A stretch of DNA of 64,000 nt. Origin: Rebecca billardiae RCC1528 (lineage: Eukaryota > Protista > Haptophyta). The position numbers were made by a program, and so were the translations under genes. The DNA is taken from contig OZ251233.1 in assembly GCA_965240325.2 (NCBI GenBank), forward strand, positions 2,232,001 to 2,296,000, in the 5' to 3' direction. This document shows positions 20,810 to 61,537 of the stretch, in pieces; positions within the stretch are counted from its first letter, which is position 1; each line of letters starts with the position of its first letter. The notes under the pieces were generated by a model. It worked only from the letters and a program-made list of their open reading frames with translations. It was not told where the DNA came from and searched no databases.

Positions 20810-22759
20810 TCATCGTCGTCGTCGGAGCTGCAGCCAGCTGCCGCTGCGCCGGTCGTCGCCCGGCGCTGTCGCGGAGCGCCCCGTGGGCGACGGCCCTGCC
20901 GGCGGCGACCAGTCCGCGCAGCTGCTCGGCGGCGACGCGCCGCCATCCACGCCGCCGTCTGGCCTCCCCGCAGCTCGGGCGGGCGGCGGCGGCGCCGCGG
21001 CGGACGATGCCGCGAGCGGAGGGGGCGTCGCGGCCGGCTCCGAGCGCTGCGGGGCGCGAGGCCGAGGCGGCGCGGGCGGCGGCGGCGCAGCGGGCGGAGA
21101 TGCGCGCGCCGCGCTCCCCGCGCCGCGCGGCGCGGCGGCGGCCGACGCGGCGGCGGCGGCCTTCGCCGCGGCGGCGCGCCTGCTGCGGCAGCGGATGCTG
21201 TCCAGCCCAGTCCACGCGGTCAGCCCCGCCATCGCGGCCGCGCTCAGCCCGATCGCCGCCTCGCACGAGGCTACGTCTGCGAGCACGCCGAGGCCGACGG
21301 GGCAGACGAGCCCGAGCACGTCGGCGGCGGTGCGGTGCACCGAGAGCGCGCGGCCGCGGATCGACTGCGGCGTCACCTGCGCGGTGAGCGCGCCCACCGC
21401 GGGCGTCGCCAGCCCCGCCGCCACGTTGGACAGCGTGAGCACGCCCAAAAACGCGCTGTACGAGTCGACGCACGCGAGCGCGCCAAACGAGAGATGGGAG
21501 CCGAGCATCCCGCCTGCGCTGAGCCAGCGCTTGTTGCCCAGCCGGTCGGCGAGCCAGGAGCCGACGGGCATGCTCACCATGTACACCGCGGACACCGCCG
21601 CGAACACCGCGCCCAGGCTCGCCGGCCCCACGCCCCACGCCGCCAGGTGGAACGGGATCACGGCCATGAAGCACGACTGGCTGATCGCTGTGCACGCCGA
21701 GATGGCGATGATCAGCCGCTGGTCGGCGGAGGCGAGGATCTTGCGCCACGTGGACGCGCGCCACCACGCGAGGAGCGTCTCGACGCGCCCGTTCGCCCCG
21801 GCCGCGGGCGCCGCGGCGAGCGCCGTGGCGCTCGCGGCCGCCGCGTCCGTCGCCGCCGCCACGCGCGCCGCGGGCGAGCCGGCCGCCGCCGCCGAGCGCG
21901 CCGCCGGCTGCGGCTGCGCGTGCGGCGCGGGCTCCTTGTGCGTCGCGTGCGGCTTGACGGTGAGCGTCTCGGGCAGCGCCATGTACCCGAGCGTGCACAT
22001 CAGCGTGCCCGCGCCCGCCAGGTAGAACGAGTTGAGCGCGCCGTACTGCTCCGCCACCACGCCGCCGACCGCGGGGCCGAGCGCCCACGCGCTGCTCACG
22101 ACCGCCTGCTGGATGCCCATCAGCTTGGCGCGGTGCTCGGGCGCGCGGTCGGAGAGGTCGGCGATCATCGCGCCGGAGCCGACCATCGAACAGCCCGAGC
22201 CGAAGCCCACGAGCGCGCGGAACGGCAGCAGCGCGAGCAGCCCGTACGGCATCGCCAGCCCCGTGCCCACCACGCCGAGTGCCGACAGCATCGTGCCGAC
22301 GATCATCAGCGGCCGGCGGCCGACCGTGTCGGCGAGCCGGCCGAGGGGGATGTTGACGAGGAGGCGGGCGGCGGAGGGCAGAGCGAGCACGATGCCCAGC
22401 CCCGACGCGCCCAGCTCGCCCGTCTCCTGCGCAAAGTAGGGCAGCACGGGCACCACCTGCGACATGCCCAGGTTGAGCATCAGCTGCGCGCCCGTCAGGA
22501 TGGCGACGGGCACCCACGGCGGCTTGGCGGCGGCGCCGCCCGACGGGCTGGCGGACTCGCCACTGCCCGCGTGCGCGCCCGCGCTGTCGGGCTGAGCCTC
22601 GCCCGGCGCCGGGCGCGCGCCCGGGCGCGCGTCGGCGTGCGCATGCTCGCGGCCGCTGCTCGCGTCCGGCCGCGGCGTGCCGAGCGAGAAGGCGGCGAGC
22701 GGCGGCGCGCGGCACAGCCGCGGTGGGCCGCGGCCCGCACGCAGCACGCTGCGCAGCAT
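20810..22759 (-). CDS. Major facilitator superfamily transporter (DHA1/TetA-like), with Arg-rich N-terminal extension; 3' end uncertain
   Basis: Motif A GRLADTVGRRPLM, FRALVGFG, ALGPAVGG, SWLADRLGNK, RGRALS; about 12 hydrophobic helices. Confidence 0.88.
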   Translation of the reverse strand: MLRSVLRAGRGPPRLCRAPPLAAFSLGTPRPDASSGREHAHADARPGARPAPGEAQPDSAGAHAGSGESASPSGGAAAKPPWVPVAILTGAQLMLNLGMSQVVPVLPYFAQETGELGASGLGIVLALPSAARLLVNIPLGRLADTVGRRPLMIVGTMLSALGVVGTGLAMPYGLLALLPFRALVGFGSGCSMVGSGAMIADLSDRAPEHRAKLMGIQQAVVSSAWALGPAVGGVVAEQYGALNSFYLAGAGTLMCTLGYMALPETLTVKPHATHKEPAPHAQPQPAARSAAAAGSPAARVAAATDAAAASATALAAAPAAGANGRVETLLAWWRASTWRKILASADQRLIIAISACTAISQSCFMAVIPFHLAAWGVGPASLGAVFAAVSAVYMVSMPVGSWLADRLGNKRWLSAGGMLGSHLSFGALACVDSYSAFLGVLTLSNVAAGLATPAVGALTAQVTPQSIRGRALSVHRTAADVLGLVCPVGLGVLADVASCEAAIGLSAAAMAGLTAWTGLDSIRCRSRRAAAAKAAAAASAAAAPRGAGSAARASPPAAPPPPAPPRPRAPQRSEPAATPPPLAASSAAAPPPPARAAGRPDGGVDGGASPPSSCADWSPPAGPSPTGRSATAPGDDRRSGSWLQLRRRR

Positions 22760-22961
22760 CGCCGGCCCCGGCGCGCGCGCCCGCGCGCCAGAGCACCGCA
22801 GCAGCGTCGCCGCCGTCGCTGCGGACCCCCGCGAGGATCGCGCTGCTGCCAATTGAGCTCCTCGACGCTGCCGCCGCCGGTCGGGCGCGCGGCCGATCGC
22901 AAGATCCTTCTGGAGCGTCAAATGAATGCGCTCAAGGGGCAGGTACAAGTAAAAGCCCACG

Positions 22962-25900
22962 ATGGCGGCCTCCGGCCGCGCGCGCCCGCGGCGGGGCGAG
23001 CTGCGCGGGCTGCAGGCGCTCGTGCTGGTCGGCTCGGTTGCGCTACTCGTGGACTACCTCCTGGCCGCGCTCGTGCTGCGCCGGGTGCTGCCCGCGCGCC
23101 GCGCGCCGCCGCACGGCGCGGCGCCAGCGCGCGGCGCTCCGCGGGCTGGCGGCGGCGCCGACGCGGCGTCGGCGCTGCTCGAGCGCGTCGCGCGCCCGCG
23201 GCTCGAGTCGGTGCTGGCGGCGCCGTCCGAGCTGCGCATCTACGTGTACCCGCTCCCCGCCGCCTTCAACGAGGCCGCGCTCCGCGCGCTCGAGTCTGCG
23301 CCCGCAGACGTGCGCGCGTGGTACCCCCCCCTTCGGGTGGAGGTGGATGTGCACGAGGCGCTGCTGCGCTCGGCGTCGCGCACGCGCGATCCGGAGGAGG
23401 CCGACCTGTTCTACGTCCCCGTGTACGCATCGGCGCACATCCTCGTCGACAACGGCGAGCACGGCGTCGACTGGCCCGAGGGCAACCGCGCGCGCGCGAT
23501 CGCGTTTGTCCAGCGCGCGCTCGAGCACGTCGCGGGTGTCGCGCCGCACTTCAACGCGTCGGGCGGGCGCGACCACGTGCTCACGCTGTCGTACGACTTT
23601 GGGCGGTGCCTCACGCACGTCCCCGCGCTCGCCGCCGACGGCGTGGGCCCGCGCCTCGCCCGCCACGCCATCGTGCTGTCGATGTTTGCCGACGGCGCGC
23701 GCGCGCCGGGCGGCCGCTGCCACGCGCACGGCCAGGACGTGGTGATCCCGCCGCGCGTCGAGGCGGCGCGGCTGCCCGACGCGGCGGCGGTGCGCGGCAG
23801 CGCGCGGAACGAGACGCTCCTCTACTTCCGCGGGCGCACCAAGGCGTACCTCCCCGCCGCGCGCAGGCACGACCCGGTCGGCGCCGACTGCTACCGTGGG
23901 CGCGCGGAGCCGGCCAACGCGTGCGGCGCCGTGTACTCGGCCGGCGTGCGGCAGCTGGTGGTGGCGCTGCACGCGGGCAGGGCGGGGTTCGAGGTGAGCT
24001 CGACGACGGACGCGCAGGTGCGCAAGTCGGCGCAGTCGCACGCCGACGCCTCCGCCGCGATGCTGCGCGCGCGCCACTGCCTGTGCGCCGCGGGCCTCGC
24101 GCCCTGGTCGCCCCGCCTCGTCGAGGCTCTGGCGCATGGCTGCACGCCGCTCTTCACGTCGCTCTCGCCGCCGGCGGAGCTGCTGCCGTTCGGCGAGCTG
24201 GTGGACTGGCGCGCGCTCTCCGACCGCGTGGACGCGTCCGAGCTCGCCGCGCTCCCCGCCGCGCTCGCCGCGCTGCGCGCGCGCGAGGGCGCGCCGACGG
24301 CGCCGCAGCTCGGCCTCGCGTCCTCCCTGATGCGCTACAGGGGGCCTGGGCCGTCGGCGTCGGCGTCGGCGGCGGGCAGGGCGCGCGGGCTGGACGCGCA
24401 CGCGCTGATCGAGTACTCGCTGCGCCCGCGCGCCGCGTGCGCCCGCGTGCGCATGCGGCACGACGCCACCCTCGCGCGCGCGCTCGCCCTGCACCGCGCG
24501 GAGCTGCGGGCTGAGGAGGCGGCGCGCGCGGAGCAGGCGCGCGCGCTGCCGCCCGAGCCGCCGCCGCCGCCGTTCCGCTGGGCGGCGCCCGGCGCGTCGG
24601 TGGACGGCGTGGGCGCGCGCTCCGACGTGGGCGGCCCCGGCGGCGGCCTCGGCGGGCCGCACGGCCTCAAGCTGTACGTGTACGCGCTGCCCTCGGAGTA
24701 CAACCGCGCATTCGTGGCCTCCAACCCTAAGTGCTCCTCGCACATGTTCAGCTGGGACGTGTACCTGCACGCGCGGCTGATGGCGGACGGCGGGGAGGAG
24801 GGGCTGGCGACGGGCGTGCGCACGGAGAACGCCTCCGAGGCCGACCTCTTCTTCGTGCCCGTGTACACGATGTGCAACTTCAACGCGTGCGCGCGGCCGC
24901 GCGCGCGCTCCACGCGGCCTCGCGCCGCGCGCGCCCACACGCGCGCCCCCGCCGCGCGCGCGGCGCGCTCGCGCCGCAGGCGCGGGCTGGCGATGCAGGA
25001 GCTGTCGCGGCCGCTCGTCGAGGGCGCGATCGCGTACATCGCCTCGGCCCACCCGTGGTGGGCGCGGCACGGCGGGCGCGACCACGTGTTTGCGCTGCCC
25101 GGCGACTACGGCGGCTGCTTCACGTATCGGCGCGCGCCAAGCAATTCCATCCCGAGGGCGCTGCGCTCGTCGGTGCTGCTGCAGACGTACGGCGAGGTGG
25201 GGCGGCCGTGCTACGCGGGCGCGGCGGCGACGGTCGTCGTGCCCGCCGTCGCGTCCAACGTCGCGTTCCGCGCGAGCGCGCGCGGCGTGCGGCCGCGTAC
25301 CACTCTCGCCTACTTCCGAGGCGACTGCCACGAGCTGGGCGGCGGCGGCGGCGGCGGCGCGGCGGCCGAGGGCGGCGGCGGCGGCGGGGGCAACGGCTCG
25401 GCGGCGGGGGGCGGCGAGGCGGGCGCGCGCTGGTCGGCGGACGCGTACACCGCGGGCCTCGCGCGCCAGCTCTTCTCCGCGCGCGCGCAGCTCGTGCGGC
25501 ACTGGGCGGGGCGCGACCCGCGCGTGCGCATCGAGTGCGGCCGCGCCTCGCGCCAGCAGTACCTGCTCGAGATGGCGCAGTCGACGTTCTGCCTCGCGCC
25601 GAGGGGGTGGGCGCCGTGGTCGGCGCGGCTCTTCGAGGCGCTCGAGGTGGGGTGCATCCCCGTGCTCCTCGCCGACGGCATCGTCCTCCCGTTCGCGCAG
25701 ACCATCGACTGGTCCTCCATCGCCGTCGTGCTGCCAGAGGGCCGCGTGGACGCGTTGCTCGACCATCTCGAGGCGATCTCGCCCGAGCGCGTGCGCAGGA
25801 TGCAGGGCGCGCTCGCGGCGCTGCGCCCGTCGCTGCTCTTCTCGTGGCCTCCCGCGCCGTGCGACGCGTACGAGCTCACCCTGCTCTCGCTCGCGAGGCT

Positions 25901-31852: not shown

Positions 31853-33190
31853 TCATGGGCTGGGCGTCGCGCCCGCCGACGAGCGCGCCTGCTGCTCCCA
31901 GTAGTGCACCGGGTCGCCCCACTCGCCCCACGCGATCTCCTTGCCCGCGGTGCGCACGCGCAGCTCGAGGCAGCCGCGGCACTGCGTCGCGGTCTCGTCG
32001 AGGCACGGCTTGCCCTCGTACAGCTGGTAGTTGGCGCGCGTGTCGGTGGGCGTGAGGATCGGCATCAGGATGTTAGCGCCGCGCCGCAGCGCGACCTCGC
32101 GCCCGTCGGCGCGGATGGCCTGGAGCGCGGTGGTCGCGGCAACGTTGACGTCGCCCATCGTCAGCCGCGCCAGCGCGACCATCCTGGTCGTGCGCTCGAA
32201 GACCCACTCCTTGTACCGCTCCTTGCTCCACCCCTTGGCCTGCAGCTCCTCCATAAACATCTCGCCGACCGGCGTGCCCGCCTCGTACACGTACGGGCCC
32301 ATGCCCACCATGTCGATGGACTCGCGGCGGAACCAGAGGAGGTCGCGCGCCTGGTCGGCGGTGGTCTGCGTGGGCAGCCCGATCATCACGCCCGTGCCCA
32401 GCTGGAACCCCAGCTCCTGCAGCTGCTTGAGGCAGCCCGCGCGCGTGTGCCACGAGTGCAGCTCGTCGGCTGGGTGGATGCGCGCGTACAGCTCGGGGTT
32501 GGACGTCTCGATGCGCAGCAGGTAGCGGTGCGCGCCCGCGTCGAGCAGCGCGCGGTAGTGCGTGAGCGGCAGCTCGCCCACCGAGAGCGCGACCCCCAGC
32601 CCTTTCCGGCCGCACGGCTGCGCCGGCCTGCCCGACGCCTCGTCCATCGCCGTGGTCTCGGCGCGGATCGTGCGGATCACGTCGCACAGGAAGTGCAGCC
32701 GCTTCTCGCTGAGCAGCTCGCCGCTCTGCAGCATCACGCTGCCGTACTGGTGCTCGTGCGCCCACTTGGCGATCTCCACGATGGCGTCCTTCTCCATCGT
32801 GTACCGCTTCACCTCCGCCATCTTCTTGCGGATGCCGCAGTAGCCGCAGTTCTTGCGGCACACGTTCGAGAACTCGATCAGCCCGCGGAAGTGGACCTTG
32901 CCCTTGTAGAAGCGGTCGGTCACGGAGTCAGCCTGCAGGTACAGCGCCTTGAGCAGCTTCTCGTCCGTCGACTCGAGCAGCGTCTCCAGCGCGGGCTGGT
33001 CGAGCTCGACCGTCTCACCCGGCTCGAGGCTTTCCTTGCCCACAAACGCGGCGAACGGGCGCGTGCGCGAGCGGATGACGTCGGGCGCGAGCGGCGGCAG
33101 CGGCGGCACGGCGAGCGAGCGGGTGCGGCCGGCGAGGCGCCACTTGAGCGCCTCGCGCGGCGCGCGGCGTGACCAGCCGGCGCGCAACAT
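31853..33190 (-). CDS. hydE: [FeFe]-hydrogenase H-cluster maturase HydE (radical SAM)
   Basis: RGLIEFSNVCRKNCGYCGIR (CX3CX2C), YLLRIETSNPELY, GTGVMIGLP.QT, DMVGMGPY, ATTALQ, GANILMP, YQLYEGKPC and CX7CX2C; intronless. Confidence 0.95.
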   Translation of the reverse strand: MLRAGWSRRAPREALKWRLAGRTRSLAVPPLPPLAPDVIRSRTRPFAAFVGKESLEPGETVELDQPALETLLESTDEKLLKALYLQADSVTDRFYKGKVHFRGLIEFSNVCRKNCGYCGIRKKMAEVKRYTMEKDAIVEIAKWAHEHQYGSVMLQSGELLSEKRLHFLCDVIRTIRAETTAMDEASGRPAQPCGRKGLGVALSVGELPLTHYRALLDAGAHRYLLRIETSNPELYARIHPADELHSWHTRAGCLKQLQELGFQLGTGVMIGLPTQTTADQARDLLWFRRESIDMVGMGPYVYEAGTPVGEMFMEELQAKGWSKERYKEWVFERTTRMVALARLTMGDVNVAATTALQAIRADGREVALRRGANILMPILTPTDTRANYQLYEGKPCLDETATQCRGCLELRVRTAGKEIAWGEWGDPVHYWEQQARSSAGATPSP

Positions 33191-33486
33191 CCCGCGCGAT
33201 GGACGCCGCCTAGCCGGTCAGTTGACCACGGCGCGGTCCTGGCTCGAAGTGGCGAGCCGTGCGGCTCGCGCTCTTACACGGGCATCGATTCATTCGACCG
33301 TAATGTATGCGCAGCGGGCCAATCAAGGGCGGTCGGCTGGCGGAAACTTCACAGCAGGGTGGGATTTGACCACGGAATGGCCCTGAATCTGTGAGGTTTG
33401 GACGTTTGGTGCGGCCGACCTGGCTCCAACGCGAACCAATCGGAAAGGCCTGCTTGGTCAGTCACAGAGCGGGCACGAACGGTCCG

Positions 33487-35097
33487 ATGTCGGCGTACGC
33501 GCTCCGCCGGGCGGCGCTCATGCTCGGCGCGCGGCGGCTGCCGGCGGCGGCGTGCGCGCGCGCCGGCCGGAGGGCGCTGTCCATGGCGGCGAAGCCGCAG
33601 GAGCTCAGCTGGGCCGACGCGAAGAAGATGCCCTCGCCGTCCGCGGGCAAGAAGAAGCCGGGCCCGGTGAAGGGCAGCGACGTGCCGCGGCTCAACATCG
33701 GCATCTTCGGCGCGATGAACGCGGGCAAGTCGCTGCTGATGAACCGCATCACGCGGCAGGAGACGTCGATCGTCGACTCCACGCCGGGCACGACCGCGGA
33801 CACGAAGATCGCGCTCCTCGAGCTGCACGACATCGGGCCCGTGAAGCTGTTCGACACCGCGGGCGTGGACGAGACGGGCGCGCTCGGCGAGAAGAAGCGC
33901 GCGAAGACGCTGGCGAGCCTGAAGGAGTCGGACCTGGCCGTCGTCGTGATCGACGCGAACGCGCTCGGCGCGGGCCGCGCGCAGCAGCTCAGCTGGGAGC
34001 GCGAGCTGCTCGAGGCGGCCGCGCACGGCGGCGTGCTCCCACTGCTCGTCGTGAACGCCAAGCGCACGCAGGTCGACGCGGCCGCGGTCGAGGCGACGCG
34101 CGCGGCGCTGTGCGACGGGCTCGGCGCCAAGGCCGCCGAGGGCGCCGCCGCGCGCGGCGCCGCGCTCGCGTACCAGCCCTCCGACTTCGCCGACGCGCCC
34201 GCGCTCGCGGTCGACCTCGCGGACGAGCGCGAGGCGATCCGCGCGCTCACCGCCTTCCTGCAGAGCAACGCGGCGCGCGTCAAGGCGTTCATGCCGCGCG
34301 CGCTGCCGGAGCGGTACCTGCGGCCCGACGCGGGCGTGTTCCTCAACATCCCGATGGACGCCGAGACCCCCTCGATGCGCCTCCTCCGGCCGCAGGCGCT
34401 CGTGCAGGAGGACGCGATCCGGCACTGGGCCACGACCGTCTCTTACCGGATGGACCTCGGCGCGGCGCGCGGCGCGGACGCGGACGCGCGCGACAAGGAG
34501 AAGGCGCGGTTCCAGCGCGCGCTCCGCGCGGCGATCGAGGCGTGCCCGCCCGACGCGCCGAAGATCCTGATCACCGACTCGCAGGCCATGGACGTCGTGC
34601 ACCCGTGGACGCTCGACGAGTCCGGCGCGCCGCTGATCGACGTGACGACGTTCTCGATCGCGATGATGCACCGCATGAGCGGCGCGCGGCTGCCGCTCTT
34701 CGCCGAGGGCATGCGCAAGTTCATGCAGCTCGCGCCGGGGGACCGGGTGCTGATGGCGGAGGCGTGCAACCACAACCGCATCACCGACGTGTGCAACGAC
34801 ATCGGCATGGTGCAGATCCCGCAGATGATCGGCGCGCAGACCGAGGGCATCGAGATCGAGCACGCGTTCGGCCGCGAGTTCCCCGCGCTCGACAAGGGCC
34901 TGGGCAGCTACGACCTGGTGATCCACTGCGGCGCGTGCATGATCGACCACCAGAAGGTGCGCGCGCGCATCGCGGACGCGCTCGAGGCCGGCGTGCCCAT
35001 CACCAACTACGGGCTGCTCATGTCGTACGCGTACAACGGCGCGGCCGCCCTCGAGCGCGTGCTCCAGCCGTGGGAGGACAGCCACGGCGCGCACTGA
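33487..35097 (+). CDS. hydF: [FeFe]-hydrogenase H-cluster maturase HydF (GTPase/scaffold)
   Basis: IGIFGAMNAGKS, SIVDSTPGTTAD, DTAG, ITDSQA, TTFSI, EACNH...DIG..QIP, IHCGACM, VPITNYG; intronless. Confidence 0.95.
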   Translation: MSAYALRRAALMLGARRLPAAACARAGRRALSMAAKPQELSWADAKKMPSPSAGKKKPGPVKGSDVPRLNIGIFGAMNAGKSLLMNRITRQETSIVDSTPGTTADTKIALLELHDIGPVKLFDTAGVDETGALGEKKRAKTLASLKESDLAVVVIDANALGAGRAQQLSWERELLEAAAHGGVLPLLVVNAKRTQVDAAAVEATRAALCDGLGAKAAEGAAARGAALAYQPSDFADAPALAVDLADEREAIRALTAFLQSNAARVKAFMPRALPERYLRPDAGVFLNIPMDAETPSMRLLRPQALVQEDAIRHWATTVSYRMDLGAARGADADARDKEKARFQRALRAAIEACPPDAPKILITDSQAMDVVHPWTLDESGAPLIDVTTFSIAMMHRMSGARLPLFAEGMRKFMQLAPGDRVLMAEACNHNRITDVCNDIGMVQIPQMIGAQTEGIEIEHAFGREFPALDKGLGSYDLVIHCGACMIDHQKVRARIADALEAGVPITNYGLLMSYAYNGAAALERVLQPWEDSHGAH

Positions 35098-35730
35098 GGA
35101 GGCGGAGGGAGGCCGGCTGGCGGCTGAGGGCGGGGTCGCCGCGCCGCGCGGTCCGGTGCAGCGGCGGCGCACACCGGCCAGCATGCGCAGGCCACGCCGC
35201 GCGCTCACCCACGCCCGGTTGGCACCGCCGGTCCACGGGCACGGAGCGCGCTTGCCGTGGTTACTGGACTATGCGCGGTCCGACGGTGTGACCGGCCCCT
35301 GCGGTGGATGGGCAGTCGCCAGTCGGCGCGGGCCAGCCTCTGAGTCTGACTGAGTCGGAGTCGACTGTAGACCTCAGTCTGCCGTGTTACTCAGCTCGTC
35401 CAGTGATGAGTCACGCGTTAAATGAAACCGTAGGGCCCCGGCTACGGCCGCTACGGCCACGGGCGCGGTCTCGGGTCTCGGCCCGACTCTGTCTCTGTAG
35501 TCTGTTACTCTATCTGCTGTACTTGTAGCCCGCCTGGGCGCCGTATAGAGCAGTCGCGTACTGATGACGTACGCCAGACGTACGTGCCAGCAGGCCCAGC
35601 AGCCACCGCCGCCAGGCGCCACGCCGCGGCACTGATGCGGTTGCCACGAGCCGCGCCGAGCCGGCACGCCGCACGGGCCGCGAGGCCGCGGTCCCAATTC
35701 CCATGGGCTGTGACGAGTGTGAAGTGTGCT

Positions 35731-36586
35731 GACCCGTTGCACGGGTGAGTGACCGTAGGGCGGTGAAAATGCGACGTACCGGTGAAAATACGGTTTTGCA
35801 ACTAGCGCTGGGCGATGGCTGCCGGGCGCGACGAGCCGAGCGGATTGGTGCACGGGGAATCCAATTCCCCGTGCACCAATCCAATCCGTTCGTCGCCAGG
35901 TGCTGCCGTTGCCGAGATCGAGCTGCAAAACCCTCAGCAGGTGGTCAAGAGAAGGAAACGGGGAGGGCTGTCGCAGCGCGCGCGCCGCGGTGGGAAGAGA
36001 GAAGGGCTTGCCTCCCAACTGCAGCTTTGGCAGCGTTCCCTCTTGCGGCAGTGGAAGCCGACGACGAGGAGGATGACGACGCAGCTGCTGATGACTGCTG
36101 CGAAGCAGCAGCGGTGACACTCTGCGGTGCACAGCTGCCACCGCGCGCGCCGCACGCGACTCGGACTCGGGTGATGGCGACAGCAGCACAGCAGTCCTCA
36201 TGAAGACGATGAAGCTGCGTGCACGGGTGCACGAGGTGGCAGGCGAAAGCGCGCCGACGAGACAGCTCTTGACACGCCTGAGCGCACGCCCATGCTCGCC
36301 GAGCGCGAGCGCTGCAAGTGCAACTACAGTGCGCGCCGCGCGGCAAGTGGATGCAGGCTGTACTCGGCGGCACTGCGTCCGCGGCCATCGTCTCTTCACT
36401 TGTCGAGGCTGCTGCTGCGGCGGGCCGGGGGCACTACCCGGCACGCGCGGCGTAGCGCGCTAGACGGAAGGTGATGGTAGACGCACTGTCACGCTCCCGC
36501 CGCCGCCGCCGCCGCCTGCAAGACTGTATCGTCACTCTAGGCCGCCGAAGTGTCGTTTTTTCGGCGCTCACCGCTTGCAACGGGTC
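35731..36586. mobile_element. Non-autonomous TIR element (GACCCGTTGCA ends, 4-bp TSD TGCT), family copy 2
   Basis: tgct|gacccgttgcacgggtgag ... tgtcgttttttcggcgctcaccgcttgcaacgggtc|tgct; 856 bp versus 858 bp for copy 1. Confidence 0.82.
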
Positions 36587-36774
36587 TGCTTCAGATGGGC
36601 ATGACTCAATGAGACCGTGACTGTGAGCCGCTCCGCGCGCACGCGGCCCTCGACGCCATCGCCAGCTTCATCAGCTTGGCCGTTGGGCCCGCCGCCGCCG
36701 CCGGCCGCGTCGCCCCGCCGCCCCGCGCACTGTGACTGGTGAATGGCTTAGCGACGCTACCGGAAGGCGGCTGC

Positions 36775-37551
36775 TTATGCTGACGAGGCGCCTCTGCTTC
36801 CCACCAAGAAGGTGAGGGCAAAACGCGACTGCCACTCGTCGAGGACGTCGAGCTGACGCTCCGTGAATGCACATGCCGGCCGGGCGAGCTGCCGATCCAC
36901 CGCCGCCAGGGCGCGCAGCACGGTGAGCAGCGCGCGCACGGCCTCCACGTGCTCATCGCCCGCCTGTGCGCCCGCCTTGGCCAGGCGCTTGAAGCCAGCG
37001 GCCTTGGCGCCGTGCAGCGGCCCTGTCTGCAGCGCCTGCTGCGAGACGAGGAAGACGCGCGTGGCGAGCTCCTTTGAATCGCGCAATGCGCCCTCATCGC
37101 CGAGCGCGCGGCACAACCGCGCGTGCGCGTCGATGGCTGGGAGCCAGGCGCGCACGGCGTCTGCCGGCCGCATAGCGCATGTTGCGCTCAGTGACTGCTG
37201 CACGCTGTCAATCGCACGATGCGCGGCGCGTTCGCGTCGACGCGCCTCTGCCCCGTCCACGTCATCCACCTCGGCCTCGACGGTGTCCGCATGCGCCTCT
37301 GCGCGGCTGTCGCTGAGGGGCATCGGTGGAGGCATCGTGGGAGCGCCGCCACTGTCCTCGGCTGCGGGCGCGTGCGCGACCGCGCCATTGTCGAGGGCAT
37401 GCACGTCCTCGTCGGCGTCAGCGGGTGCCCCTGCTTCTGTGCGCCGTCGGCTGCGCTGCGCCTGCAGCCCCTCGCGCTTCTGACGCCCCGACGCTGGCTT
37501 GCGGCGCAGGCCGGCGAATGGGTGGCGCACACCATGCGAGCGATCCGCCAT
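36775..37551 (-). CDS. Hypothetical protein (258 aa), divergent from hydG
   Basis: ATG-initiated, protein-like composition with a helical C-terminal half (QQALQTGPLHGAK..FKR...FTERQLDVLDEW); function unrecognised. Confidence 0.6.
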   Translation of the reverse strand: MADRSHGVRHPFAGLRRKPASGRQKREGLQAQRSRRRTEAGAPADADEDVHALDNGAVAHAPAAEDSGGAPTMPPPMPLSDSRAEAHADTVEAEVDDVDGAEARRRERAAHRAIDSVQQSLSATCAMRPADAVRAWLPAIDAHARLCRALGDEGALRDSKELATRVFLVSQQALQTGPLHGAKAAGFKRLAKAGAQAGDEHVEAVRALLTVLRALAAVDRQLARPACAFTERQLDVLDEWQSRFALTFLVGSRGASSA

Positions 37552-37866
37552 TGTACGACTGCTTTACTCCTGCCGCTACTGTTTTACCCCCCCGCGGTGA
37601 GTTCGTGAGCCGGTTGGGAGCCAGCCTGACGCCGATTCGAGATCAAATAATGAAGTTCGGTCGGGCTCCGACGGGTTTGGTTGCCGCTTCGCACCAAACC
37701 CCGGCGGGCGCACGCGATTGGCCGACGAGCCAGCTGCTCACGGCAACTCCTTTTCTGATAGGGCTGCCGCTCAGGCACGTTTGCACGAACTTACTACTGC
37801 GTCGTCAATCGGCCGCGTGCGTCGCCGCCGCGCGGCCAACGTCCCGGTCCAACCGCAACCGGCTTC

Positions 37867-39579
37867 ATGTGGCGGCGCACGAGCACAGCGCGGGCGGCGG
37901 CGGCGGGCGCGGCGCGGCGGCGCGCCGGCGGTCTGCTGGTGGGCAGGGGTCGGCGGTTCTCGGGGCTCACGCGGCAGCAGGAGCACGGCTCGAAGTGGAG
38001 TAAAGAGCTCGACCTCGAGGCGTCGGCCAAGGTGCCGCCCGCGAGCGAGATCATCGACGAGGCCGCCATCTTCAAGGCGCTCGAGGAGACGAAGGAGGCG
38101 GCGAAGGACGTCAACCACGTGCGCGCCGTGCTCGCGAAGGCGCTCGAGCGCGCCACGCTGCAGAAGGTCGAGGGCGAGCTCACCTCCGAGTACGTGCAGG
38201 GGCTGGACGCGACCGAGGCGGCGACGCTGCTCAACATCGACTCGAGCGACAAGACGATGATGTCCGAGCTGTTCCGCACGGCGCTGGACATCAAGGAGCG
38301 GATCTACGGGAACCGCATCGTCCTCTTCGCGCCGCTCTACCTCGCCAACTACTGCGTCAACTCGTGCACGTACTGCGCGTTCCGCTCGAAGAACAAGCAC
38401 ATCAAGCGCTCGCACCTCTCGGACGAAGAGATCCAACACGAGGTGGAGACGCTCGAGCGGATGGGGCACCGCCGGCTGCTGCTGCTCACGGGGGAGGACC
38501 CGAAGTACACGTTCGACGACTTCCTCCGCGTGGTGAGCGTCGTCGCCGGCGTGCGCTCCGAGCCGTGCGGCAACATCCGGCGCATCAACGTCGAGATCCC
38601 GGCGCTCTCGATCTCCGACTTCAAGCGCCTCAAGGCGACGGGCGAGATCGGCACGTACACGCTGTTCCAGGAGACGTACCACCGCGAGACGTTCAAGCGC
38701 GTGCACCCGTACGGCCCCAAGTCCGACTTCGACTACCGGCTGCAGACGATGGACCGCGCGCAGATGGGCGGCATCGACGACGTCGGGATCGGCGCGCTGT
38801 TCGGGCTGTACGACTACCGCTTCGAGGTGCTCGCGATGCTGCAGCACGCGGGGCACCTGGAGAGCCACTACGGCGCGGGGCCGCACACGGTGTCGATCCC
38901 GCGCATCCGCCCCGCCGACCAGGCGCCCGAGTCGATCCGCCCGCCCATGCCCGTCTCGGACCCGGACTTCCTCAAGCTGGTCGCGGTGCTGCGGTGCGCG
39001 GTGCCGTACACGGGCATGATCCTCTCCACGCGCGAGAGCCCGCAGATGCGGCGCAAGCTGCTGCACCTGGGCATCTCGCAGATGTCGGCGGGCTCGAAGA
39101 CGGACGTGGGCGCGTACGCCAAGGGCGACCAGAAGACCGAGCTCGAGACCTTCGGCACCTCGCCGCACCTAGACCTGCTGGACTCGCTCGACGGGCACAT
39201 TGACGAGGCCGCGACCGCGCCCGTCGACGGCGCCGAGCTCAAGGGCCAGTTCTCGCTGCTCGACCACCGCACGCTCGACGAGATCGTGCGCGACCTGCTC
39301 GAGCTCGGCTTCGTGCCGTCGTGGTGCACGGCGTGCTACCGCCTCGGGCGCACCGGCGCGAGCTTCATGAAGATCGCGAAGAAGGGCGACATCCACAACT
39401 ACTGCCACCCGAACGCGCTGCTCACGCTGCGCGAGTACGTCGAGGACTACGCGTCCGACGACACGCGCAAGAAGGCCGAGGCGGTGATCGAGTCGGAGAA
39501 GGGCACGCTCTCGCGCACGGCCGCGCTCGACCGCAAGCTCGCGAAGATCATGCACGGCGAGCGTGACCTCTACTTCTGA
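37867..39579 (+). CDS. hydG: [FeFe]-hydrogenase H-cluster maturase HydG (radical SAM tyrosine lyase)
   Basis: GNRIVLFAPLYLANYCVNSCTYCAF, GNIRRINV, YTLFQETYH, PYTGMILSTRE, PSWCTACYRLGRTG..FM...CHPNALLTL (CX2CX22C), GERDLYF; intronless. Confidence 0.97.
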   Translation: MWRRTSTARAAAAGAARRRAGGLLVGRGRRFSGLTRQQEHGSKWSKELDLEASAKVPPASEIIDEAAIFKALEETKEAAKDVNHVRAVLAKALERATLQKVEGELTSEYVQGLDATEAATLLNIDSSDKTMMSELFRTALDIKERIYGNRIVLFAPLYLANYCVNSCTYCAFRSKNKHIKRSHLSDEEIQHEVETLERMGHRRLLLLTGEDPKYTFDDFLRVVSVVAGVRSEPCGNIRRINVEIPALSISDFKRLKATGEIGTYTLFQETYHRETFKRVHPYGPKSDFDYRLQTMDRAQMGGIDDVGIGALFGLYDYRFEVLAMLQHAGHLESHYGAGPHTVSIPRIRPADQAPESIRPPMPVSDPDFLKLVAVLRCAVPYTGMILSTRESPQMRRKLLHLGISQMSAGSKTDVGAYAKGDQKTELETFGTSPHLDLLDSLDGHIDEAATAPVDGAELKGQFSLLDHRTLDEIVRDLLELGFVPSWCTACYRLGRTGASFMKIAKKGDIHNYCHPNALLTLREYVEDYASDDTRKKAEAVIESEKGTLSRTAALDRKLAKIMHGERDLYF

Positions 39580-44436: not shown

Positions 44437-46669
44437 CTACTTGGAGGCGTTGTACTCGGCGGTGAACTTGGTCATCATCTCCTTGATCGAGTCGTCGGTG
44501 CCCTTGGAGAGCGCGCCCTCCGCCTTGATCGTGTCGATCAGGCCCGGGTGCGAGGCCTTGGTGTGCGCGAGCAGCTGGTCGAGGAACGGGCCGACCTGCG
44601 CACACGCGCACACGGACACAGAGAAGAGAGCAGGAGGCGCGCGTGAGGCCGCGAGCGCGCGGCGGCGGCGCGCGGCGCGTGCGCGTGCGCGTGCGCTCAC
44701 CTCCGAGATCTGCAGCTTGTCGAGGAAGCCGCGCGTGCCCGCGTAGATGAGGATCACCTGCTCCTGGAAGGGCAGCGGCACGTACTGCTTCTGCTTGAGC
44801 AGCTCCGTCAGCCGCGCGCCGCGGTTGAGCAGGTACTGCGTGGCCGCGTCGAGGTCGGAGCCGAACTGCGCAAACGCCGCCATCTCACGGTACTGCGCGA
44901 GCTCGAGCTTGAGCGTGCCCGCGACCTGCTTCATGGCCTTGCGCTGCGCCGCGGAGCCTGTGCGTGCGCGGCAAGCGCGGGTCGGCGGCGTGGGCCGGGC
45001 GCGCGCGGCGCGATCAGCCTCCGCCTCTGCGCGCGCGGCGCTGCCGGCGGCGGCGGCGCGCGGGCGCGGCGCCGGGCGCGGCGCCGGGCGCGGCGCCGGG
45101 CGCGCGCGGCGAGGGCGGCGGCGCGCGGGCGCGCACCGACGCGCGAGACGGAGAGACCGACGTTGATCGCCGGCCGGATGCCGCGGTAGAAGAGCTCGGC
45201 CTCGAGGAAGATCTGCCCGTCCGTGATCGAGATCACGTTGGTGGGGATGTACGCGGACACGTCGCCCGCCTGCGTCTCGATCACGGGCAGCGCGGTGAGC
45301 GAGCCCGCGCCAAACGCGTCTGACATCTTGGCCGCGCGCTCGAGGAGGCGCGAGTGCAGGTAGAAGACGTCGCCGGGGTAGGCCTCGCGGCCGGGCGGCC
45401 GGCGGAGCAGCAGCGACATCTGGCGGTACGCGACCGCCTGCTTGGAGAGGTCGTCGTAGATGATGAGCGCGTGCATCCCGTTGTCGCGGAAGAACTCGCC
45501 GATCGTGCAGCCCGAGTAGGGCGCGATGAACTGCAGCGGCGCCGCCTCCGAGGCGGTGGCGGCGACGATGCACGAGTACTCCATCGCGCCCGCCTCCTGC
45601 AGCGTCTTCATCAGCTGCGCCACCGTCGAGCGCTTCTGCCCGACCGCGACGTACACGCAGTAGAGCGACTTGGACTTGTCGCCCGCCGCGTTGATGCTCT
45701 TCTGGTTGATCATCGCGTCGATGGCGACGGCCGTCTTGCCCGTCTGCCGATCGCCGATGATCAGCTCGCGCTGCCCGCGGCCGATGGGCACGAGCGAGTC
45801 GACGGCCTTGAGGCCCGTCTCCATGGGCTCGTGCACCGACTGCCGCGCGATGATGCCCGGCGCCTTCACCTCGATGCGCTGGCGCGTCACCTCGCCCGCG
45901 ATCGGCCCCTTGCCGTCGACCGGGTTGCCGAGCGCGTCGACGACGCGGTTGAGCATGCCCAGGCCGACGGGCATGTCGATGATCGCGCCGGTGCGCTTGA
46001 CCGTGTCGCCCTCCTTGATCTCGCGGTCGTTGCCGAAGACGACGATGCCGACGTTGTCGTTCTCCAGGTTGAGCGCCATGCCCTTGATGCCGCTGTCGAA
46101 CTCGACCATCTCACCGGCTTGCACTTTGCTCAGCCCGTGCACGCGCGCGATGCCGTCGCCGATGGCGAGCACCTTGCCCACCTCCGTCACCTCCGAGGCG
46201 CTCGAGAACTCGGCGATCTTCTTCTCGATGATCGACGAGAGCTCCGACGCCGACGGCTGGTTGGCCTTGGACGACTCTGCGCGGCGCGGCGCGGCGCGGC
46301 GCGATTCGAGGCGGCGGCGGCGCGGAGCCGGCGCGCGGCGCGCGTGCGCGGGGGAGTTCAGCCGGCGGCGAGCGAGCGGCGGCACGCGGGAGCGTGGTGG
46401 ATTTCACGGCGCCCCCCACCCGCGCGGCGTCGCGCGGCCTCGCGGCCGCGCCACGAGCTGGCGCACGCCCCGCGGCCGCGCGAAATCAACGCCCAGACCG
46501 CCGCCGCGCGGGGCGGCGGCCGACCCACGGCGCGCGTGCTCGGGCGCGCACCCGCTGGCCGGTTCGCCCGGAAGTGGCGCGCGCTGCATGCCGCGACGAC
46601 ACGCGTCGCAGCCCGTGCCTCGGGCACGACGCTGCGCCCGAGGGCGGCGAGCGAGCGCTGGGCCAGCAT
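44437..46669 (-). CDS. ATP1: Mitochondrial F1-ATP synthase subunit alpha, nuclear-encoded; introns 46277-46551, 44958-45136, 44596-44700
   Basis: [63 protein letters not shown]; Arg/Ala/Ser presequence [12 protein letters not shown]... Confidence 0.97.
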
Positions 46670-57025: not shown

Positions 57026-58162
57026 ATGGCGACGACGCGGCAGCGGATGCGGCTGGCGTGCATCGCGGCGGCCGTGCTCGCGGCGGCAGTGAGATCGAGT
57101 GCGCTCGCGGCGCGCCCCGCGCCGCAGGCGCCCCTCCGCCGCGTGGCCAGTGGCAGGTGCGCGCTCGCGCGCCGCCGCGCCGGCTGCCCCGCGGCGCGCT
57201 GCGTGCCGCCGCCGCTCAGCCTCGGGGCGTGCGCGCGCGCCGATGACGCTCGCGCCGCGCCGCCGCGCTCGCGCAGGCGCGCGCAGCAGCGCATGATGCC
57301 TCGCGGCGGCGTGAAGGTGCCGTACAAGGTGCCCAACTCCGAGTTCTACCAGTGGGTCGGCGTGTACGAGCGCATGGCGCGCGAGCGCATCCTCTTCCTG
57401 CGCTCCGGCCTCGACGACAACGTGGTGAACGGGATGATCGCGACGCTGCTCTACCTGGAGAACGAGGACCGCTCGTCGCCCGTGCAGCTGTACGTCAACG
57501 TGCCCGGCTCGCTCACCAAGGCGGGCCTCGCCCTCTTCGACACGATGCGCTCGATCGCGTTCCCGATCGCGACGCTCAACCTGGGGATGGCTGCCGACAT
57601 GGGCGCGTTCGTCGTCGCGGCGGGGGACAAGGGGAAGCGCTCGTCGCTGCCGAACGCGCGGTTCGTGCTGTGCGCCCCCGCGATCCGCGGCGTGCCCGGC
57701 GAGCAGCCGCCCATCATGCAGGCCGAGGACATCGGCCGCGAGGTCGGCGAGGTGCTGCGCGACCGACGCAGGCTGGCGGGCGCGCTCGCCGAGCTGACGG
57801 GCCAGACGGAGGACGCGGTGCTCAAGGTGCTCAAGCGCGACGCGTACTTCGACGCGAAGGAGGCGAAGGCGTTTGGGCTCATCGACAACATCGTCGCGCC
57901 GAAGACGGGCGCCAAGACGGCGGCCAGCGACGACGACGTGCGCGCGCGCGCGCGCGCCCTCTCGCGCGCGCGGCGGCGCGCGCCCAGCCTGCCCTGCGCA
58001 CACGCCACACGCTCACTCGGGACACGCGCGCCGCGCCCCGCCGCGCAGTTTGGCTTCGGCAACTTCGGCGCGAACCCGCCCGACGCCGCGGCGATGGGCG
58101 CGGGCGGCGCGCGCGCGGGAGACGGCGGCGGCGACTCGGACTACACGCCGCAGCTCGCGTAG
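57026..58162 (+). CDS. clpR: Plastid-targeted non-catalytic Clp protease subunit (ClpR-like); probable introns 57157-57276, 57938-58048
   Basis: RERILFL, LLYLE, LYVN.PG, GKRSSLPNARF, RD.YF.A.EAK.FGLID; the catalytic Ser position reads AADMG and the His position reads VLCAP; signal peptide plus transit-like leader. Confidence 0.85.
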   Translation: MATTRQRMRLACIAAAVLAAAVRSSALAARPAPQAPLRRVASGRCALARRRAGCPAARCVPPPLSLGACARADDARAAPPRSRRRAQQRMMPRGGVKVPYKVPNSEFYQWVGVYERMARERILFLRSGLDDNVVNGMIATLLYLENEDRSSPVQLYVNVPGSLTKAGLALFDTMRSIAFPIATLNLGMAADMGAFVVAAGDKGKRSSLPNARFVLCAPAIRGVPGEQPPIMQAEDIGREVGEVLRDRRRLAGALAELTGQTEDAVLKVLKRDAYFDAKEAKAFGLIDNIVAPKTGAKTAASDDDVRARARALSRARRRAPSLPCAHATRSLGTRAPRPAAQFGFGNFGANPPDAAAMGAGGARAGDGGGDSDYTPQLA

Positions 58163-60505: not shown

Positions 60506-61537
60506 TCAGCCCCGCAGCGGGCGGCCGAGCGGCGCGAGCACGAGCGCGTCGATGGCGGCCGCCCAGCCGTCGGCCGCGTTGGACGGCGCGACCAGCTGCG
60601 CGCTGCGCTTCGCGGCGGCGACGCCGTTGTCCATGGCGACGGAGTGGCCGCAGAGCTGGAGGAGCTGCACGTCGTTCTCGCCGTCGCCGATCGCCAGCGC
60701 CTCCTCGGGCGCCACGCCCCAGCGCTCGAGCAGCTCCCCCGCCGCCCTCCCCTTGTGCACGCCGCGCGGACACACTTCCACGCACCAGCGGAGCGCCTGC
60801 GTCACGTCCGCGCGCGTGCCGACGAGCAGCTCGAGCTCGGCGCGGAGGCTGCCGCCGGCGGCCTCCTCGTCGGAGGTGAGGAAGAGCACCTTGTGCACCG
60901 CCCCCTGCACCGCGCCGCGCGCCGCCAGCCGCGCCACGCCCCGCAGCGGCGAGTCGCCGACCGCGGCCAGCTTGTGCGCGAGCGCGCACTTGGGGCGGTC
61001 CACGAGCGCCTCGTCGCCGACGTACGCCACGGCGGTGGCGCGGGAGCGGCGCGCCTCGGCGAAGTCGAGCACGTCGGCCACCACGTCGGCCGGCACCGTG
61101 CTCGACTGCGGCGCCGCGCCCTCGTCGAACACGGCGCCGCCGTTGAGGTAGATGCCGGGGACGCCGCCGTTCAGCGCGCGCTCGGTGAGCACGTGCTGCG
61201 TCCACGCGCCGGCGCGCGCGCGGCCGGTGGCGGGGACGACGCGCACGCCGAGCTCGGAGAGCCGGCGCAGCGCCTCCGTCGAGCGCGCGGAGAGCCGGTG
61301 GTCCGGGCCGAGCAGCGTGCCGTCGCAGTCGGTGAAGATCACGCGCGGCGGCCCCACCTCCCGCAGCGCGCGCGCCCACGCGGCCGGGTCGGGCAGCGCG
61401 AGCTGCGCGGCCGAGGGCGGCGAGGCGGAGGCGCTGATGCACGCGTGGCGCGGCGCGGCGCGGCTTGCGACGCGCGGGAGGCTCGGCCTGCCGGCGAGTG
61501 CTGACGCCACGGCCACGAGCTGCATCACGCTGCGCAT
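60506..61537 (-). CDS. Cof-type HAD-IIB hydrolase, probably plastid-targeted
   Basis: FTDCDGTLL, PATGR, YLNG, GVHKG, AIGDGENDV.LL...G.SVAM.N. Confidence 0.9.
   Translation of the reverse strand: MRSVMQLVAVASALAGRPSLPRVASRAAPRHACISASASPPSAAQLALPDPAAWARALREVGPPRVIFTDCDGTLLGPDHRLSARSTEALRRLSELGVRVVPATGRARAGAWTQHVLTERALNGGVPGIYLNGGAVFDEGAAPQSSTVPADVVADVLDFAEARRSRATAVAYVGDEALVDRPKCALAHKLAAVGDSPLRGVARLAARGAVQGAVHKVLFLTSDEEAAGGSLRAELELLVGTRADVTQALRWCVEVCPRGVHKGRAAGELLERWGVAPEEALAIGDGENDVQLLQLCGHSVAMDNGVAAAKRSAQLVAPSNAADGWAAAIDALVLAPLGRPLRG

Follow-up and report, generated by a model that had tools for sequence, protein, structure and literature searches.

Short Arg-rich leaders on the H-cluster maturases HydE, HydF and HydG of the haptophyte Rebecca billardiae suggest assembly in the mitochondrion

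In this study, we have analysed the genes of the three H-cluster maturases, HydE, HydF and HydG, in a window of 64,000 nt (~70% GC) from the haptophyte Rebecca billardiae RCC1528 (contig OZ251233.1, positions 2,232,001 to 2,296,000; the window is the whole stretch of DNA examined, and coordinates below refer to it). The identity of the three genes, the integrity of their motifs and the position of their starts are established, as is the presence at each N-terminus of a short leader that is rich in Arg, nearly free of acidic residues and devoid of a signal peptide. As judged from these features, matrix import of HydE, HydF and HydG by cleavable presequences is the most likely mechanism, to which we assign a probability of roughly 55%, and assembly of the H-cluster is probably located in the mitochondrion.

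Results

Three intact maturase genes

The genes occupy the following positions:

31853 to 33190, minus strand: HydE, radical S-adenosylmethionine (SAM) H-cluster maturase; 445 aa, single exon; TIGR03956, CX3CX2C motif, GC content at third codon positions (GC3) 0.97
33487 to 35097, plus strand: HydF, GTPase scaffold maturase; 536 aa, single exon; Pfam HydF_tetramer and MMR_HSR1
37867 to 39579, plus strand: HydG, radical-SAM tyrosine lyase maturase; 570 aa, single exon; TIGR03955, cluster motifs

Two of the three proteins exceed the curated equivalog cut-offs of their NCBIfam profiles, HydE with 267.2 bits against TIGR03956 (cut-off 254.6) and HydG with 517.6 bits against TIGR03955 (cut-off 312). 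HydF reaches 253.2 bits against TIGR03918, under the curated cut-off of 325.55, with a match that is split into two stretches, and this score is probably explained by an insertion that separates the GTPase domain from the dimerisation domain. Pfam places both HydF_tetramer (118 bits) and the GTPase domain MMR_HSR1 (65 bits) on the protein, and every one of its nearest relatives is a HydF. The catalytic and cluster-binding Cys and His motifs are complete in all three: the radical-SAM CX3CX2C of HydE at residues 111-118, the P-loop (75), CxH (427) and HCxxC (480) of HydF, and the N-terminal CX3CX2C (163) and C-terminal CX2CX22C (487) of HydG. HydE, HydF and HydG are intact and probably functional nuclear genes. 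The insertion at the boundary of the two HydF domains is apparently lineage-specific, and a Lys/Pro-rich segment of the same protein, at residues ~33-65, is common to its relative from the MMETSP transcriptomes.

The annotated ATGs are the true starts

The start ATG of each maturase is the first one past an in-frame stop, which lies 9 (HydE), 39 (HydF) or 35 (HydG) codons 5' of it. Over the whole genes, GC3 is 0.96-0.97, and it is just as high within the leader codons (0.97 in HydE, 1.00 in HydF and 0.90 in HydG), falling to 0.67, 0.69 (33391-33486) and 0.66, respectively, in the in-frame stretch immediately 5' of the ATG. This step at each ATG shows that coding starts there, and that the leaders are real, translated sequence. 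An earlier reading of this DNA from its sequence only, which ascribed mitochondrial-type leaders to all three proteins, had quoted their N-termini, and these are present exactly as written.

Other starts were considered. The open reading frame (ORF) of HydF opens at a GTG (33391), upstream of its first ATG at 33487, and initiation at this non-ATG codon is ruled out by the GC3 of 0.69 in between. In HydE, the next Met is residue 124, beyond the CX3CX2C radical-SAM motif, and in HydG it is residue 131, the use of which would cost ~75 residues that match bacterial HydG. Starts further downstream had been named as what would overturn the sequence-only reading; in HydE and HydG they lie too far into the protein for that.

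Composition of the leaders

The leaders, and the N-termini encoded in the window with which they were compared, are as follows. KD9 denotes the maximum 9-residue Kyte-Doolittle hydropathy, leader charge was counted over the first 30 residues, and ↓ marks the junction with the mature part.

33113 to 33190, minus strand: HydE leader, residues 1-26, ending R-S-L↓A; net charge +7, one acidic residue, KD9 1.22
33487 to 33579, plus strand: HydF leader, residues 1-31, ending R-A-L↓S; net charge +7, KD9 1.08, acid-free to residue 39
37867 to 37959, plus strand: HydG leader, residues 1-31, ending R-R-F↓S; net charge +9, KD9 0.86, acid-free to residue 39
46552 to 46669, minus strand: inferred exon 1 of ATP1 (F1 alpha, nuclear) with its presequence; upstream ATG exon, GTGCGC donor, inferred splice
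57047 to 57091, plus strand: signal-peptide-like hydrophobic core of ClpR (CLP_protease domain); KD9 2.89, 13-residue run
61490 to 61537, minus strand: signal-peptide-like N-terminus of a HAD hydrolase (Hydrolase_3 domain); KD9 2.49, 10-residue run

The first 30 residues contain 8 (HydE), 7 (HydF) or 9 (HydG) Arg and Lys residues and a single acidic one, E13 of HydE. Beyond it, the next acid is found at residue 37 in HydE, and at residue 39 in both HydF and HydG, with the mature parts made up of 12.5-14.4% Asp and Glu. An ER (endoplasmic reticulum)-type signal peptide was sought in the three leaders and none was found (KD9 0.86-1.22), their longest run without charged residues, His, Gln, Asn or Pro being of 4-7 residues. 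The N-termini of ClpR, the HAD hydrolase, an aldo-keto reductase (AKR) and Dus have KD9 values of 2.5-2.9 and hydrophobic runs of 10-13 residues, and by sequence are clear signal peptides. In the case of ATP1, the main ORF (44934-46403) has no start Met, and the leader encoded by the inferred exon 1 has a net charge of +3 and a KD9 of 1.54. Thus, the sequence-only reading described the leaders correctly as Arg-rich, near acid-free and without a signal peptide (net +7, +7 and +9; 1, 0 and 0 acids; KD9 at most 1.22), and its grouping of them with ATP1 and apart from ClpR and HAD (2.49-2.89) stands. Import into a complex red-type plastid, surrounded by four membranes, requires an ER-type signal peptide.

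Each maturase is longer at its N-terminus than the bacterial core by 45-65 residues, the cores defined by bacterial profiles starting at about residue 60 in HydE, 66 in HydF and 58 in HydG. The leader itself is closed in every case by a motif of the form R-x-(F/L)↓(S/A), at residues 24-27 (RSL↓A, HydE), 29-32 (RAL↓S, HydF) and 29-32 (RRF↓S, HydG). The mitochondrial processing peptidase (MPP) cuts at R-x-(F/Y/L)↓(S/A), a site of the R-3 type. Between leader and core, HydE has at residues ~36-58 (33040-33085) a eukaryote-specific block that is missing in bacterial HydE and common to Acanthamoeba, glaucophyte, jakobid and pelagophyte sequences.

Leaders of the orthologues

The closest relatives come from an MMETSP organism, with 82% (HydG) and 78% (HydF) identity, and the closest named ones from the pelagophytes Aureoumbra lagunensis and Chrysophaeum taylorii, with 62-80%. 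In the alignments, the leader sequences are themselves unconserved, and HydE, HydF and HydG become conserved from residues ~36, ~66 and 44 (W44-S45), respectively. The first 26-31 residues vary in sequence and are conserved in character, the pelagophyte and MMETSP leaders being likewise short, acid-poor and free of a signal peptide. Nine orthologues from pelagophytes and MMETSP were scanned, and six of them have an R-3 motif at or near the junction of leader and mature part, aligned by column in HydG. The acid-poor leader of Aureoumbra HydG has 4 Lys and 3 Arg in its first 30 residues, and this use of Lys beside Arg indicates that the basic character is not merely a product of GC bias.

The MMETSP mRNAs of HydG and HydF, each represented by three independent assemblies, contain a stop in frame, 14 codons ahead of the homologous ATG (which in HydG reads 'MW') and no upstream ATG (uATG); therefore the N-termini of this relative are complete and lack a signal peptide. 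In Chrysophaeum, the ATGs of HydF and HydG are 74 bp apart and the leaders measure ~16 and ~27 residues, which is too short for a bipartite plastid signal. The HydG proteins of diatoms, eustigmatophytes and chromerids also have short leaders without a signal peptide.

The order and orientation of the genes vary. In Chrysophaeum taylorii (L010:8439-13171) the maturases are adjacent in the order HydF (minus), HydG (plus), HydE (minus), and in the MMETSP relative (L005:97-3687) HydF and HydE point towards each other and their transcripts overlap. These comparisons suggest a cluster that is conserved and variable in order and orientation. A search of metagenome contigs with the H-domain of Nannochloropsis HydA gave 80 loci at 44-55% identity and a Nannochloropsis-like one at 87%, none of them from MMETSP samples and one from a human-gut metagenome; these matches were not used.

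Upstream exons

Since the genome has introns, as seen in ATP1 and LST8, upstream exons that add to the maturase N-termini are a real question. LST8 contains at least three introns, and the splice donors inferred in the window, at 2287, 2593 and 2795 (LST8) and at 46551 (ATP1), read GTGCGC in three cases and GTGTGC in one. The two introns measured have a GC content of 0.82-0.89, richer than intergenic DNA (0.63-0.64). This mixture of single-exon and intron-bearing genes at ~70% GC is similar to that of Diacronema lutheri, with 73% GC and 45% single-exon genes (PMC8379373). Two regions were relevant:

33191 to 33486, no strand: intergenic region separating the divergent starts of HydE and HydF; 296 bp, GC 0.64, only short, non-hydrophobic upstream ORFs
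37534 to 37866, plus strand: candidate upstream mini-exon of HydG, judged unlikely; ATG 37534, 21 codons, donor 37597, acceptor 37760-37761

A systematic scan of 1 kb upstream of HydE and HydF found no frame-compatible exon with both a strong donor and a strong acceptor, and the intergenic region between the two genes holds, on either strand, neither a hydrophobic mini-ORF nor a strong splice-compatible exon. In the case of HydG, the mini-exon would encode a hydrophobic core (KD9 2.37) and is followed by a GTGAGT donor, with a polypyrimidine-AG acceptor at a distance of 165 nt, beyond which 35 in-frame codons lead to the ATG. Splicing at these sites, the product of which was translated for frame compatibility alone, would delete an in-frame stop and the out-of-frame uATG at 37650. 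Signal peptides added by upstream exons, which the sequence-only reading had listed as a way in which it could fail, are thus not found within 1 kb of HydE and HydF, and in HydG come down to this one unlikely candidate.

Contigs from one sequencing run, compared with 32800-38300 (5501 letters), gave few short colinear pieces and no joints. The Logan contigs L001 and L011-L013 follow the window colinearly and stop at the edges of a dispersed repeat; they are DNA-like and uninformative on splicing. This repeat, between HydF and HydG (35731-36524), is where several variant contigs of 95-99% identity, with small indels, pile up. The ORF that diverges from HydG (36775-37551, minus strand, 258 aa) has no Pfam match and a GC3 of 0.79, lower than that of the neighbouring genes; it coincides with a gene call on a Logan contig and is a putative gene.

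Discussion

Strength of the mitochondrial assignment

The sequence-only reading went on to place H-cluster assembly in a respiring mitochondrion. This holds in part: the leaders are real and lack a signal peptide, but import is suggested by their composition and the R-3 motif, and their amphiphilicity is no better than that of shuffled sequences. The description of the leaders as mitochondrial-type is likewise partly supported by what the sequences offer, namely charge, scarcity of acids, lack of a signal peptide, N-terminal extension and a cleavage motif of low specificity. Composition, taken as a net charge of at least +7, at most one acid and no hydrophobic core, is matched by 1.6% of the internal windows from real coding ORFs.

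A number of observations weigh against matrix import. The same composition is found in 15% of the six-frame ATG ORFs of this ~70% GC window, and Arg/Ala richness by itself therefore discriminates weakly. When the hydrophobic moment (the maximum over 11-, 14- and 18-residue windows) was compared with 2000 shuffles of the same residues, leader amphiphilicity above that of the shuffles was not found, a fraction of 0.23-0.97 of them reaching the observed value, and the moment of HydG lies under most of its shuffles; the ATP1 control does somewhat better (0.08-0.29). The R-3 motif has low specificity in sequence rich in Arg, Leu and Ser, with a chance that we estimate at ~1/4 per leader. Among the orthologues, the HydF and HydG leaders of the MMETSP relative have one Arg only in their first 30 residues, and Chrysophaeum HydE has hardly any leader, its 8 residues being preceded by a stop 5 codons before the start. 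In HydF, residues 12, 33 and 48 are in-frame Mets that precede the P-loop, so that leaderless forms are possible, and the context of its first ATG is weak: position -3 is a pyrimidine and position +4 a T, whereas position -3 of Met48 is an A. Finally, HydA and HydE of Naegleria gruberi carry predicted presequences and yet are cytosolic (PMC4007538). Within the window, the first Met of an MFS transporter (20813-23053, minus strand) also opens an Arg-rich, acid-free, presequence-like N-terminus, an illustration that N-termini of this kind are common in the genome.

Most of these points could also be read as signs that the extensions are translated but do not function in import, that the maturases and HydA are cytosolic as in Naegleria, and that the composition reflects drift at ~70% GC. 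The Naegleria precedent, the amphiphilicity, the frequency of such composition among random ORFs and the weak start of HydF with its Mets 33 and 48 all fit this explanation. However, every orthologue examined, those of lower GC included, retains a basic, acid-free character, an R-x-(F/L)↓S motif is found again at the junction of leader and mature part, and the GC3 of the leaders (0.90-1.00) is that of the normal coding regime; the Naegleria extensions, moreover, are unusually long in comparison with leaders of 26-31 residues. We therefore regard a cytosolic location as unlikely, though it deserves serious weight. A variant of lower probability still, which we would call quite improbable, is that the leaders are ambiguous and localisation is mixed or conditional, with leaky scanning to Met33 or Met48 of HydF yielding mitochondrial and cytosolic forms. 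The start contexts of HydF would favour this, and hydrogenases of Mastigamoeba and Trichomonas have been cited as lying both inside and outside the organelles (PMC4007538). HydE and HydG, however, have no usable downstream start. For HydF, the suggestion that the protein begins downstream thus fares unevenly: codons 1-33 have a GC3 of 1.00, as if translated, but leaderless isoforms could arise from the later Mets.

Targeting of HydG, at least, to the plastid or to both organelles would require that the upstream mini-exon supply a signal peptide and that the present leader be the transit-peptide half of a bipartite signal. The mini-exon would join HydG in frame, and the Phe in the junction region could follow a cleavage site. 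Against this, GC3 is 0.62 in the mini-exon and 0.66 in the bridging codons, compared with 0.88-1.00 in the real leaders (P ~6e-4 and ~9e-5, respectively, if coding GC3 is 0.90), and the putative 'intron' has an intergenic-like GC of 0.61, far from the 0.82-0.89 of introns with GTGCGC or GTGTGC donors. The exon would also begin within the divergent neighbour ORF, ATG 37534 falling inside 36775-37551, and the HydG mRNA of the MMETSP relative has its in-frame stop before the homologous 'MW' start. Given that HydE and HydF have no such candidate, the maturases would in addition be split between compartments. All together, we consider plastid targeting very unlikely; the splice sites upstream of HydG may belong to an intron of the 5' untranslated region (5'-UTR) or to an alternative first exon, or may have arisen by chance.

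A model for H-cluster assembly

Returning to import into the mitochondrion, we propose that HydE, HydF and HydG, translated from their annotated ATGs, would each bear a cleavable, Arg-rich, acid-poor presequence of ~26-31 residues. This presequence would carry the maturases through TOM/TIM to the mitochondrial matrix, where the processing peptidase may cut at the R-x-(F/L)↓(S/A) site; both import and cleavage are inferred from the sequences. The matrix would then be where the [2Fe] subcluster of the H-cluster is built, close to the Fe-S machinery (ISC) and to the glycine-cleavage H-protein, and HydA would presumably be matured in the same compartment as the maturases. The glycine-cleavage H-protein is mitochondrial in eukaryotes. 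Its requirement in H-cluster maturation (PMC12752695) is consistent with assembly in the matrix, which it does not prove.

A different arrangement, in which the maturases reside in the respiring mitochondrion while HydA stays outside, seems to us highly improbable. If it were true, either the [2Fe] precursor, free or bound to HydF, or the matured HydA would have to cross the mitochondrial envelope, amounting to an H-cluster counterpart of the export route from ISC to CIA that is so far undescribed.

A mitochondrion capable of producing H2 in a phototroph is an existing hypothesis, published for other lineages. The present genes extend the predicted 'H2-capable aerobic mitochondrion' to the haptophytes, which, with Emiliania alone sampled, were listed in a 2021 survey, together with Aureococcus, as lacking all of the Fe-S enzymes of anaerobic metabolism (PMC8003979). 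The maturases of pavlovophytes, pelagophytes, diatoms and eustigmatophytes may be suited to testing whether mitochondrial hydrogenase maturation is ancestral in eukaryotes (PMC13632651).

Comparison with known systems

In the case of Acanthamoeba castellanii, HydA and HydE-G have been located in the mitochondrion by proteomics and tagging, and this respiring mitochondrion makes H2 under anoxia (PMC13632651). Rebecca resembles it in having separate HydE, HydF and HydG genes of eukaryotic type, HydE being 52% identical and sharing the N-terminal block. The two differ in that Acanthamoeba is a heterotroph without a plastid, with a location known by experiment, whereas Rebecca is a phototroph with a complex plastid and its maturases are assigned to the mitochondrion by prediction. 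Companion work predicts HydA, HydE and HydF to be mitochondrial across eukaryotes (PMC13632651).

Naegleria gruberi is also an aerobic protist whose maturases have N-terminal extensions predicted to be mitochondrial. These extensions are atypical as well as long (PMC4007538), whereas those of Rebecca are short and end in the R-3 motif.

The clusters of other algae with separate maturase genes are close to that of Rebecca. Those of the pelagophytes and eustigmatophytes, represented by Chrysophaeum taylorii (CTAYLR_003954-6) and Nannochloropsis (PMC3499364), keep separate, neighbouring maturase genes that have no introns and encode short basic leaders lacking a signal peptide. They depart from Rebecca in the order and orientation of the genes, and in Nannochloropsis hydA is also included, in a hydA-E-F-G cluster (PMC3499364).

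In green algae, the sequence-only reading had drawn a contrast with a chloroplast system, and this is outdated, as it holds for Chlamydomonas and its kin only (PMC12924338). For most core chlorophytes, the predicted location of the maturases is the mitochondrion; a shift to the plastid is confined to the Reinhardtinia, the group to which Chlamydomonas belongs (PMC12924338). Chlamydomonas reinhardtii HYDEF and HYDG belong to the same maturase families as those of Rebecca and carry out the same chemistry (PMC8003979), but they are located in the chloroplast and HydEF is fused, the plastid location being the derived state of the Reinhardtinia (PMC12924338). The remaining core chlorophytes offer the nearer parallel, being phototrophs with maturases placed in the mitochondrion in silico, which implies an H2-capable algal mitochondrion (the Leontynka study, PMC12924338); those with predicted mitochondrial HydEF and HydG have the long form of HydA (PMC12924338). 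They differ from Rebecca, in which HydE and HydF are separate, by their fused HydEF, and by a primary plastid for which transit peptide and presequence can be confused. As plastid import in Rebecca would need an ER signal peptide, the lack of one is more telling here than in green algae and, in algae with four-membrane plastids at large, should serve as a clearer discriminator between the two organelles.

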